From positions 89,400 through 153,399 of the forward strand of contig MU619290.1 in assembly GCA_025201805.1 (NCBI GenBank): a DNA stretch of 64,000 nucleotides. The letters run 5' to 3'. The stretch is from Parasitella parasitica NRRL 2501. Lineage: Eukaryota; Fungi; Mucoromycota. Both the position numbers and the translations under genes were made by a program. Positions within the stretch are counted from its first letter, which is position 1; every line of letters begins with the position of its first letter. The notes under the pieces were generated by a model. The model saw only the letters and a program-made list of their open reading frames with translations, was not told where the DNA came from and made no database searches. Positions 15,349 to 23,686 of this stretch are shown here, in pieces.

Positions 15349-18300
15349 ATGACATTCAGCGCCCAGTTGTCAACTATTTTGGTGGAATGGACAACGGCGC
15401 TTGTTGATAACGACATCACTCTGGTTCAAAAGTTCCTGCTCAAGGAACCTGAGTTACTGTGGACTCCTATACCCCAATCACTAGATAATCTCGATCACCT
15501 TGAACAGCGGTTAGCTGAATCAAAGAAACTAGGATCGACATTTCAGCCAGTCAGTGCTATTCAGTTTACCTGCCTCTACATTAACCAAGATGATCAATTG
15601 AAACTAATAGCTTATTTAATTGAGGTAAGATGAACCGTTTTATTATACAGAGCATGGATGCACATGCATGTATAGCAGCAACTGAGAAAGGTCAAAAATA
15701 GCAATCTTCTCTACATGATCTTGATACTCGTTTCTGGGGTGAATGCAACAACTCGACGCTTCATTTAGCTTGCTTCCTGGAAAACAAGCCAATCATGCGG
15801 CTCTTGCTCGAAAAAGGAGTATCTGCCACTCCTGCCAATGACCTTGGCTACCTACCAAGCGATATTGCTGCTGCAGACATCATATTACACTACTTGGACC
15901 AACAAAAGCAGCAGCAATCATCTCGAAGCAAAGCTGTCAGACCTAATTATGGCACTCCCAATAAATTTAAGCTCTTGAAAGAGCTTGCAGAGGAGACAAC
16001 GAACTCGGGAGGAGACGATCACAAGACATTGGAAATTAGTCTTGATCGCCAAAAGTCGGATGGCCGGTTATTTCGTAAGGGTAGAGTCAAGGAGACACAG
16101 CAAAAAGTATTAGCTGAAGAAGCTGAATTGGAGAAGCAGAGATTAAAGAGACAGATGGAGGTGGCTCAGTTGGCTAAAAAGTCGGCAGTCAAGAACAACC
16201 CCTTATTTATGAAATTGGAGAAAAAGTTTGGTCCAGCCAATAAAGCGACTGGGGAGATAGCAAGTAAGCATATAAACGCACGGATGGAGCAAGCCATTGC
16301 CAAAAGAAATTCTAGCGTGATTTCGTCGCTCAAGGTCAAATCGTATGTGTCTTCAAGCATCTTTCTCCAAGCAGATGAAGATGCCACGATCGAACAAAAA
16401 CTACCTCCGCCTCCTATTCCTCCTGCTGCAACCATTACCACAACCGATTCCCACAAAACTGACGACCAACAAGACGAGAACTCCAACAACGAAGTTTGTG
16501 CCACGACGCCGCCATTGAATGTCAATAAAACACAAACTCTAATCGGGAGCACGGAACCTGATGAATTGTTGGTTGACGGGCAATTTGCCATTTCTGATAA
16601 TCCTGTGCTAAAGGATCATGAAACATTGACAGAAGAAGAGGATGAGGAATCCAGTGAGGATGAGGATGAATTCGATGAGCAACAGGACTTTGATTCGAGT
16701 ACAAACAATCTCAGTTCATCATCTTCGCTGACGGTTACATCCAAGATCAACTACTCACCAATAGAGAACAAGACTGTATACCCAGACATTCAAAGTTATT
16801 ACCAGTACAATAAAACCAGTGCAAATGCTTGTCACCAAAATCAGCATCGTGAATTGGATCATAGTATAGCAGAAACTGACGAGGAAGAAGAAGAGGAGCA
16901 AGAGAGCGGGGAGAGCGGGGAGAGCGAGGAGAACGAGGAGAGCGAGGAGCAAGAGGAGGATGAAGAGGAGGATGAGGAAATCGTGCCTGTACAGTTTGCT
17001 ACTCGATTGGCAACTCCTATTTACAAATCAGTAACGATCCTCAACGAAGACCAGAGAGTAGCACCAGTGACTACAACAATCTCTACCATCAATCCATCAA
17101 AGACAGACAATGGTTGTACAGCTGTGCCAAATGAGATTGACACTATACACGAAAATCAAGAGATGGTACTTGATGATCTCAAGATAGAGGAAGCTCAAAA
17201 TTTCACCAGTCATTCAGCGGCGGCAGTAGTAGATACACCATTTGTGGAACCGCCTGAATCATCCCCGCCAGTGCCACCCTTGCGATCTCGTGAAAGTGCA
17301 ATTGCCGTATTAAAAAAGCTGGAAAAACAAGACTCAAGAGAGATGAAACGAAGGAGCGGAAGTCAAAAGGCTTCTTGGACTATGAGCATGAGCTCGTGGG
17401 CTGCTATTTTGGATAGAGAATTCAATCTAGAAGAGCTGGATCAAGAGAAGAAGCTGAAAGAAATGCAAAGATTTCGTCAATCAGTGGCCGAATCAGAAGA
17501 AAAAGGGTCGTCAGCATCACCAGATCATTGCAAAGTTGATGGATTGGGGTTGGCAAATCGAAACATGGACATGGACCCTACTGAGGCTCAAGTCGGCAGG
17601 TCTAATCCAACAGAGATATCGTTGGATTTCTCGAATTTTGAAACGCCAGCTATACCCACCGTAAGTGTTCAAAAATCGATTTCAACCAACACATCAGCAC
17701 CGCAAATTGGAGAAATTCCACGATTAAATGCGTCCAAATCAGTGCGTCGAAAGCCCATTACATCTTCTCTGTCTGAACCCAATTTGCAGCAGCAGCAGCG
17801 GCCAGCAAGTAGTGTAAAACAATACAATATTACCCTCAGCCAAGCTACAGTCAAAAAGGCAGGCTACGGCAGACTCTATCTGCATGTCAATGGCATTCAG
17901 GACATACTGCTTCCCCTGCCAAAAGACCGCGCCTATGTGCGCTGTGTGGTCAGCGATGGTCGCTTTGAGTACATGTCCCGGTATGAAATCCTATCTCAAA
18001 ACATCAATTATGACTATGAATGCGTGATTGATACGCATCCAGATATGATCATCACTATATCGCTACATGTCCGCCCTGACTATATCATGAAATCTCGTAC
18101 ACCCTTTTCACGCTTATTTTCGAAAAAGAAAAAGAAGGAATGTCTGTCTGGCTATGTCAACAAGGAGGATGGTGCTATTGGGCAGGCTCGGTTTGCCTTG
18201 ACTCACATGTTGCCTGTATGTCAGCATAACTCATACTTGGCCGGCTTCCATTGCTTCAATGCTTGGTATTCACGATCATTCAAGGAACGCCATCGACAAA

Positions 18301-18553
18301 AGAAAAAGAAGCGAGACTCTGACCGAGATGTGTTAAAAGTGGTGGGAAACTTTGATATTGAGATGCTGTATTTACCGGCAGAAAACTACAGCCAAAAGGT
18401 ATACATAAAATAATGTGAAATGCTGTTTTACATGTGGAACTAATATTAACTATGGAATAGCCGTTCCCTCAAAGCTTACGTGAATGCGACCAAATCATCA
18501 AGCAGTTGCATGAATCAAAGTCATCCTCATCAACACGATACCAAACTATTTAA
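15349..18553 (+). CDS. Ankyrin-like N-terminus, long acidic low-complexity middle and Bud4/Mid2 anillin-like (DUF1709-type) C-terminal domain
   Basis: STLHLACFLENKPIMRLLLEKGVSATPANDLGYLPSD is ankyrin-like; GRLYLHVNGIQDILLPLP...VNKEDGAIGQARF...VVGNFDIEMLYLP and last exon PFPQSLREC are anillin/Bud4-like; 3 exons. Confidence 0.65.
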
Positions 18554-18648
18554 TAAATCAATCAACGCCTGTACTATTGTGTGTATATTCTCTCTTTAAT
18601 AGCTTTTTTTATTTTATTTTTTATTTCAATTTATACGTTAAAAGGATA

Positions 18649-19529
18649 TCAAAAATCGTCACCTTGATGGGCGAAAAAGTGTGTATATGCAATAACTATG
18701 AACGTAATAATCAATTCCACATCTCCACAATAAACCTACATTTATACATACTTGTTCCATATACTAATAAACCTCCTGTGATACTCATAACCATAGCTGG
18801 TACAGTAATCTATGAATTAAACATTCTTTAGTTTCAATGCATCGGCTTTCATCGTACCGAAATAGCTTACGACTTCAGCATGGGCCAAGACAAATGGCAA
18901 ACCTACACATTGGATGCATGTTAAATCAGCACATTGCTTTACTAATCCCAACTGTTTACACTTACAAAATCCTGTGACAATAAACATGCCGGTTATGAAA
19001 TGTCCTGCATCAATGACACCACTAATACGATGTTGGTAAGAAAAAAATAAAAAATGCATTTATTATAGCGATACGCTAATACATGCCTGTTATAATCTGA
19101 CATGAGGTCGTCTTCTCCTGAGCATCTCCCACACAGAGCATTAGGCAAAGGTGCTAATAAATATGTAGCAACTGTTTGAAAACATGAGTTTGTGTGTTAC
19201 ATTTCTCGTTCTTCTCTTTGTTGTTTTTTACCAACTAATAAAGGCCACCAATTACTAGGAAATAAAAGCATGTTTAGCAGCAATTAAATACTTTTACGTA
19301 CCGGGAAATACTTACTAGTAGAGAGCACAAGATAAAATCACCAGTAGAAAGCCAATAGCCAAAACAAAAGCCAAAGCAATGATACTAAATATTGGGGGAT
19401 AAAATTAGATGCTCTCCAAGTTGTTGAGAAGAAACTATCTCTTACGCTATTAAATTTCAATGCCTTTTTTTTTAGTTGCTAGCATAACCAAGTTTATTCA
19501 CATGCAAACTTACTTCTTAAACCTGCCAT
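18649..19529 (-). CDS. VPS55: Vacuolar protein sorting 55 (OB-RGRP family), many small exons including a 1-nt exon at 19446
   Basis: Assembled MAGLRTIIALAFVLAIGFLLVILSCALYYNWWPLLV...ATYLLAPLPNAL...IDAGHFITG...LPFVLAHAEV...HQGDDF*. Confidence 0.9.
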
Positions 19530-20028
19530 AATTTGTACAAAGAAGTGTATAAAGATTAAGAAAGAACAAAAAACGTTTGGAAAACATACACATTTGAAAT
19601 GTGCATTTAAACCACGCCGACGTCAGCTGCGTCAAGGTCTTTGACATACAAAATACTACGATTCTGGGATGTCTTTCATGACTCCATGCCAAAAATTGCC
19701 AGAGCATTAAAAGTAACTTCTTTTGATGCCGCTACAAATGATTCCATCACATTCTAACAAAAGTATCCAGGCTCGAATAGATATCTGGAATTATCCGTAT
19801 TTCAGTACTTTAGCGAGCCAAAATCATGTTACCATCAGTACCATGCTATAGAGCTTGCGTATTTTCTTTGCCAACAAATTTTTATCCGACTAGTTGATAC
19901 AACCTATACTTGATGATAGACATTAAAAAGCGAGGCCGACGTCATGATTGTACATTTAATACGATGTCTATAAATAAGGCGAACCACCATCTTTGGCTCG
20001 TTACTCTTTTCTCTTTGCTCGCCATCTA

Positions 20029-22216: not shown

Positions 22217-23497
22217 CAGTGCTTCCCACTCGCAAATTACCGAATGTTTGAAAAGACCGCCCACTATTTTGAGGCTAAATTGCCCATACAAAGCAGACTA
22301 GTTTGGCCGGATGTTTGAAGTTAATTTGACCAGTTTTTATTTAATTTATGGAATGCTGAATGAAATTCTGCAAATGTTCAACAGCAACATCTTTGTTTCC
22401 TTCAACAACCCTTGATGTGAGGATTTCTACATCGGTCAACTTACTTTCCTCTACCTCTATCCTTCAAAACTTTCCAAAACTGCTCGATAGGGTTGAGCTT
22501 TAGTGAGGGGGAGGGGGGGGGGGATAGGGTAAGAAATATACAGGTATTTTAACTTGTTTGATAATTATAGAAACAACGATATCATGGCTATGAATTGGGG
22601 GGGGGGCATTGTCCATAACAACATGAAAGTCTTTCATGTTGGGAAATCCATTCATGATGTCTAATGTGTCACTGATAAACTGGGCGAAATGGCCGGCTAT
22701 AGTTCCTCTTAGTATAGCGCCGGGTGCTTTTCTTTTGACGGCGCCTACAACCCTTCTTTTTTTGACGTATCGTGGCTCCCTTTTACTTACATTAAACACA
22801 CCAAATGCCTCCGAATTGCACTCGCAGACGGCGATTCTATGATTGCCCGAGTGCCACGCTTTGACCGACGCATGTTTATATCGGAGCCTAATTCATCAAG
22901 AAATGCACAATTTTGCATATACAACAGCATGACTTTCTTAACCCATTCCTCCACAAACTTAGCACGGCGATTTGTTTTTTGACAGGGGAGTTTTTTTTCC
23001 AGGATCTTTGTTATATGCTGTCTTCCATTTTCTTGCAGTTTCGTAATGGACATTGACTGCTTTAGCTGCTTGAGAAGGTGTCATAAGTTTATCGTCGTCG
23101 ATTTTCATCCGTATGACTATTGTAGACTGATTTTCGTTCTTTTTTTTTTTTGGGAGCTGCTTCTTCCATATCAGCGTCTTTGGGTTCTTTGTTCTTGACG
23201 TATTTGTGGGGATTCGTCAAATTTGTCAGTCGAAATGATGATTCTACAACAAAGTATGACGCTTCCTTGTCAGACTCGTCTACGATTCCACGCCTACCAT
23301 CTTTGTGGAAGCTATTCATTTCAGCGAGTTACGGTATAAAGAACGGGAACATCCAAAACAAAAAAGTTGGTTAAACTATTTGCAAAATGTGGTCCCAAAA
23401 CTGGTCTCCTTTGTTTGGGCAATTTAGTCCCGCACAAGAGCCAAAATAGTGGGCGGTCTTTTTCAAGCATTCGGTAAATTGAAAGTGGGAAGCATTG
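22217..23497 (-). mobile_element. Tc1/mariner (IS630-like, DDE_3) DNA transposon, full length but frameshifted
   Basis: TIRs CAGTGCTTCCCACTCGCAAATTACCGAATG... and ...CATTCGGTAAATTGAAAGTGGGAAGCATTG flanked by TA at 22215-16 and 23498-99; transposase pieces CAFLDE, VVMDNAP, FLPYP and LNPIEQFWKV in shifted frames. Confidence 0.93.
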
Positions 23498-23686
23498 TAT
23501 CCCCAATGCAGCTGCTAAACTACAGACGTTAAAATAGTCTGGGGGCGTCACAGCAAACCGATGGCTTGTGTGTGTCAAAAAAAAAAAAAAAAAAAAAAAA
23601 AAAAACGCATTTGAACTATATCAAGTCGGCATACTCGCGATTTTCTTTTCTCTCTTTTTTCTTTATCGTGTTTATATATTAATAAA

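Follow-up and report, generated by a model that had tools for sequence, protein, structure and literature searches.

The window, i.e., the whole 64,000-nucleotide stretch of Parasitella parasitica NRRL 2501 contig MU619290.1 analyzed here, harbors on its minus strand a VPS55 gene whose spliced model comprises nine exons and encodes 128 amino acids (Table 1). The gene hosting the one-base exon is Vps55 (PF04133), a family assignment that was also confirmed by an Atlas search: exon 3 matched PF04133 above the cut-off (E 3.5e-6, 27.3 bits), Pfam Vps55 matches were found at exons 3, 5, and 6-7, and the model was 88-95% identical to Mucorales Vps55 proteins. A second PF04133 match in the genome (L002) was rejected as a chance hit, since it is antisense to another ORF, and VPS55 thus looks single-copy in this genome. 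The protein, a hydrophobic member of the Vps55/LEPROT family for which a structure search found no solved structure, shows nothing unusual; in yeast, Vps55 acts together with Vps68 in the endocytic pathway (PMC13133770). The introns of the gene measured 56-67 nt. The GC donor of intron 5 was shared with Mixia, and a GT donor was present at this intron in Benjaminiella, Umbelopsis, Glomus, Syncephalis, and Paraphysoderma. Intron 6 (63 nt; within window 18817-19059, minus strand) lacked an in-frame stop, such that its retention would add 21 residues; this retention was not seen in the transcript contig.

Table 1. Coding exons and selected introns of the VPS55 gene, in window positions
Feature	Position	Strand	Length and remarks
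Exon 1, coding part	19514..19529	-	16 nt; five codons and the first base of Thr6
Intron 1	19447..19513	-	67 nt; GT-AG; phase 1 in codon 6
One-nucleotide exon (C)	19446..19446	-	Middle base of Thr6; letter at the transcript-contig joint
Intron 2	19385..19445	-	61 nt; GT-AG; phase 2 in codon 6
Exon 3	19316..19384	-	69 nt; encodes the first hydrophobic helix; matches Pfam Vps55 positions 1-22
Exon 4	19232..19254	-	23 nt; NWWP motif
Exon 5	19087..19171	-	85 nt
Intron 5	19022..19086	-	65 nt; GC-AG; transcript contig
Exon 6	18966..19021	-	56 nt
Exon 7	18871..18902	-	32 nt
Exon 8	18752..18809	-	58 nt
Exon 9, coding part and TGA stop	18649..18695	-	

Regarding the neighborhood of the gene, a 3665-nt RNA contig joined VPS55 to a convergent plus-strand gene (window 18000-18695), suggesting that the 3' ends of the two genes overlap around 18459-18648; a plus-strand intron at approximately 18397-18458 follows the 872-aa ORF. 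On the other side, a TPR-repeat gene lies head to head with VPS55, with approximately 125 nt between the RNA contigs (window 19565-19690), and this arrangement was syntenic in Phascolomyces (L003) and Umbelopsis (L007). Farther away, short broken ORFs on the minus strand (window 22500-23578) resembled, by eye, a decayed DDE-type transposase.

The initial annotation, made from the letters alone, had proposed that a single C separates two short introns near the start codon, and every boundary that it gave, from exon 1 to the start of exon 3, was recovered in the spliced model, including the assembly of codon 6 from three exons (A+C+T, Thr6) ahead of the remainder of the 128-aa ORF. Transcript evidence came from one assembled contig of one public run and thus describes the major form rather than isoform shares or rare forms. 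Contigs of this run (run type not on record) lacked twelve introns in three neighboring genes and therefore represent spliced RNA. In the VPS55 contig, the 5' end of which lay at 19565, upstream of the coding part of exon 1, all eight introns were removed at the modelled places. The joint from 19514 to 19384 skipped 129 positions and carried one letter in between, a G on the plus strand and hence a C on the transcript; since a single 128-nt intron would leave a G from either splice site, this C must be the base between AG and GT. No other letter difference or gap separated contig and genome over the gene, ruling out an indel error in the genome.

The reading frame led to the same result, as had been predicted: skipping the C broke the frame, and splicing to any of the 11 AG acceptors downstream of the first donor, up to that of exon 3, produced a frameshift or a stop. 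The motif YAGNGTRAG, by comparison, occurred four times in the window against 4.9 expected, and AG-N-GT by itself proves nothing. The C at 19446 of the minus strand is nevertheless a real 1-nt coding exon, established not by the motif but by the transcript contig together with the frame and the comparison of orthologues: AG and GT flank it, the spliced mRNA contains it, the frame depends on it, and its presence is conserved. The donor following it, for which the plant VPS55 microexon would lead one to expect GTRAGT, was GTAAGA in the window and GTAAGT in one of the eight fungi with the exon, with other ordinary donors elsewhere. Branch motifs had been claimed for both introns; the CTAAT of intron 2 was found 24 nt before the intron end, but intron 1 contained just ACTAAA and no canonical CTRAY motif.

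Genomic VPS55 loci from twelve fungi in addition to the window were modelled using a spliced aligner that allowed any exon size, with no size prior and one natural protein as the template. Results revealed that codon 6 is interrupted, in phases 1 and 2, around a 1-nt exon both in the window and in seven genomes, namely, Phascolomyces, Benjaminiella, Umbelopsis, Glomus cerebriforme, Podila humilis, Syncephalis fuscata (Zoopagomycota), and Paraphysoderma sedebokerense (Blastocladiomycota), and the AG-N-GT structure sought in Mucoromycota is thus carried by three phyla (Mucoromycota, Zoopagomycota, and Blastocladiomycota). The exon base was C in all eight fungi, the codon was Thr in each except Paraphysoderma (Ser), and the flanking introns ranged from 60 to 340 nt. 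That annotation easily misses such an exon, as initially supposed, was evident from the deposited proteins, which were wrong at codon 6 in five of the seven orthologues (Ser in place of Thr, residues left out, or translation into an intron). In the other fungi, the structure was incomplete or absent. The basidiomycetes Mixia and Melampsora kept the phase-1 (upstream) intron alone, Pneumocystis murina kept the phase-2 (downstream) intron alone, and the chytrids Rhizoclosmatium and Gorgonomyces had neither, with VPS55 wholly intronless in Gorgonomyces and the plant-shared codon-37 intron also missing in Rhizoclosmatium. By parsimony from the two single-intron states, the ancestor of Dikarya probably had both introns. 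A quick fungal protein tree was mostly unresolved, and no conclusion was drawn from it.

The 1-nt VPS55 microexon of plants, which the initial annotation had mentioned, is real: a phase-1 microexon within blocks of 19,1,52 was confirmed by RT-PCR in Arabidopsis (Yu et al. 2022, cluster 2, PMC8831610) and has been reported in Zygnema too (PMC11096116). For comparison with the fungi, metagenome contigs were scanned with a 27-base degenerate pattern, built from the published primer and two adjacent codons, yielding 36 plant VPS55 loci, of which L017 and L020 carried the published primer sites for AT3G11530 (Arabidopsis). In six VPS55-1 genomic loci (L017, L018, L015, L011, L040, and L042), a single T formed an exon of its own within plant codon 7, with introns in phases 1 and 2 on its two sides, and the next exon was 52 nt long, thereby reproducing the published blocks. 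Aligner output for the truncated or distant loci L028 and L024 and the terminal 1-2-nt exons in L011 and L040 were template artefacts and were ignored. The alignment that pairs plant codon 7 with fungal codon 6 was gap-free as far as the LAF and NWWP motifs; the +1 register, which rests on residues 7-47, the first seven residues being dissimilar between the kingdoms, scored 115, whereas eight other offsets (-3 to +5) scored -1 or less. Hence, the equivalence of position, which had been left for checking, holds for both codon and phases, and both introns flanking the one-base exon coincide between plants and fungi.

The correspondence extended beyond codon 6. The intron after exon 4 (codon 37/38, phase 1) lay at exactly the same position in plants, and the next exon (exon 5) was 85 nt in both the window and plants, giving a fourth shared intron by equal length. 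For eight fungal and five plant introns, three exact matches had a probability of approximately 7e-5 over 360 sites, or approximately 0.01 if one site in six (60 sites) is usable; with the fourth match, these values became 5e-7 and 7e-4, respectively, and for the two codon-6 sites specifically 4e-4 and 0.016. These values speak for a shared intron ancestry of the gene as a whole. The exon of the window, with its size of 1, its phase of 1, and its rank as the second coding exon, shares with plant cluster 2 the gene family, size, phase, aligned codon, flanking intron positions, and the tendency to be missed by annotation. The two differ in the exon base (T, Val in plants; C, Thr or Ser in fungi), in the first coding exon (19 nt in plants vs. 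16 nt here), and in the exon after the microexon (52 vs. 69 nt). Moreover, the fungus has a single VPS55 copy, with no sign of the retained-intron isoform or the VPS55-2 paralogue of plants, and the plant microexon has so far been described in streptophytes only. Among the plant loci, the VPS55-2-type L024, L026, and L030 read CAG-T-GGAAG immediately before the LALLAILVS codons, compared with CAG-T-GTAAG in VPS55-1. This resembles a relic of the microexon whose donor has been inactivated, consistent with the published account (PMC8831610).

One-base exons are already known as a kind. The 1-nt exon of Arabidopsis APC11 (cluster 1, PMC8831610) is likewise in phase 1 and near the start codon, though in a different gene, and it was absent here, APC11 being a single intronless ORF (L051, 1483-1755, minus strand). 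Fungal nuclear genes also carry obligatory one-base exons like that of VPS55, including 13 in Coprinopsis cinerea (PMC12230235) and one in Fusarium CYP621A (PMC12940212), the latter reported within one genus or close kin and with no claim of cross-kingdom conservation. In the literature searched, which covered few subscription journals, no report was found of the VPS55 one-base exon outside plants or of any 1-nt exon shared across kingdoms. What would be new here is the cross-kingdom position.

Taken together, these observations point, with a probability of roughly 80%, to one inherited, constitutively spliced microexon that is older than the plant-fungus split and was followed by intron losses in many lineages. 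The plant and fungal microexons would thus trace back to a single ancestral exon, already present before the two groups parted, and other lineages would have lost it through loss of one or both flanking introns; the single-intron losses of each kind in Dikarya indicate that the structure decays both ways. As judged from a sample of plant and fungal loci, the one-base exon quite probably dates back to the last eukaryotic common ancestor or close to it and would have been spliced for more than one billion years.

Mechanistically, the structure would be a constitutive one-base coding exon with an ordinary short U2-type intron on either side. Splicing takes out both introns but leaves the C in the mRNA, where it completes Thr6 and determines the frame in which the entire Vps55 membrane protein is read. 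As the AG of intron 1 and the GT of intron 2 are one base apart, their recognition sites would overlap, and such overlapping spliceosome footprints suggest that the introns are cut in turn, each being defined across its own short length. The Arabidopsis locus L020, in which intron 2 was removed and intron 1 kept, fits either downstream-first splicing or the known retained isoform in Arabidopsis, since plants make intron-1-retained VPS55 forms (PMC8831610).

The initial annotation had further suggested that the exon acts as an on/off splicing switch. Under such regulation, skipping or retention would lead to nonsense-mediated decay or to a second N-terminus as in non-vascular plants, an explanation that could hold together with an inherited constitutive exon but that we consider unlikely. 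Skipping here would yield a 20-aa peptide and retention one of 6-11 aa, intron-1-retained forms do occur in plants (PMC8831610; L020), and the long maintenance of so awkward a structure hints at selection. However, the included form was the only one seen, in one contig, and neither the upstream-intron-retained isoform, which contigs could drop if rare, nor a conserved ORF for it was detected. In nearly all of the fungi compared, skipped or retained forms encoded short, unrelated, and unconserved peptides of 5-39 residues; the few open alternatives, whether a rescuing ATG or an open intron, were species-specific and in differing places, with no sign of a conserved second product across eight fungi. 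Furthermore, the exon has been lost from every sampled member of Dikarya and every sampled chytrid, and most plant coding microexons sit in the major isoform (PMC8831610). We therefore read the exon as constitutive rather than as a switch.

As to the age of the exon, a parallel origin, in which one codon-6 intron is ancient and its neighbor was gained separately in streptophytes and fungi (e.g., when a splice site next to the old intron was duplicated or slid), appears rather improbable. It agrees with the absence of the exon from the two sampled chytrids, one of which is intronless and the other of which lacks the codon-37 intron as well. To our knowledge, animal LEPROT has a 16-nt first coding exon and a phase-1 intron only, which also counts for this origin. 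The same is true of the 45 plant microexon clusters, none of which was predicted in Chlorophyta, albeit by a predictor trained on land plants (PMC11096116), and of the Coprinopsis and Fusarium exons, which indicate that one-base exons arise repeatedly. On the other hand, a second gain would have to hit the identical base, although any given site is just 1 of approximately 360, and in fungi the sequence around codon 6 does not form a proto-splice site. The single-intron states of both kinds in Dikarya demonstrate that either intron can be lost, and further VPS55 introns are common to plants and fungi, favoring inheritance of the exon from a common ancestor.

Horizontal transfer of VPS55 with its introns between plants and fungi is very improbable. 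The intimate association of Glomeromycotina and Mucoromycotina with plants would offer an opportunity, but plant and fungal proteins were 28-35% identical, compared with approximately 60% between Mucoromycota and Dikarya, and the exon is carried by Blastocladiomycota and Zoopagomycota too. Equally hard to credit is a gene without a microexon, in which a single 129-nt intron combines with an upstream start to give an N-extended Vps55 of 147-187 aa. Four upstream ATGs (19587, 19593, 19647, and 19707), overlooked in the initial annotation, are indeed in frame with the skipped form; nevertheless, the contig includes the C, its end at 19565 (a contig end, not a start site) lies downstream of all four, none of the seven orthologues has an in-frame upstream ATG of this kind, the MAG(L/V)(R/K) start is conserved, and an intron of 129 nt contrasts with the lengths of the other VPS55 introns here. 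An assembly error, a stwintron (nested spliceosomal twin intron), or insertion of the C by RNA editing has a negligible probability, for although YAGNGTRAG occurs at chance level, the contig matches the genome without further differences, in eight fungi (C) and six plant loci (T) the inserted base is the one that the genome itself has between AG and GT, and a stwintron would remove the whole nested sequence from the mRNA, in which the base here stays.

With the exon present in three fungal phyla at the codon where plants have it, its likely origin shifts to before the plant-fungus split. If an inherited microexon is the correct reading, the smallest possible exon would be a direct witness of an early spliceosome handling introns one base apart. 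It would also be a counter-example to the rise of the VPS55 microexon with plant terrestrialization, the heading under which the evolution of plant microexons has been placed (PMC11096116). VPS55 thus offers a testable case for the age of 1-nt exon splicing and for its modes of loss (either intron, or both), as well as a small splicing unit of 145 nt with which the order of intron removal could be studied in a Mucor-like fungus. In addition, the N-termini of many deposited early-fungal Vps55 proteins are corrected. In Calcarisporiella thermophila, two divergent Vps55 entries (P0030 and P0036) were found, and the N-termini of both look mis-annotated. In Pneumocystis murina VPS55 (L049, 1001-1110), a 4-nt exon directly follows the phase-2 intron in codon 6; it results from an additional phase-0 intron ahead of codon 8, the two introns being 42 and 43 nt.
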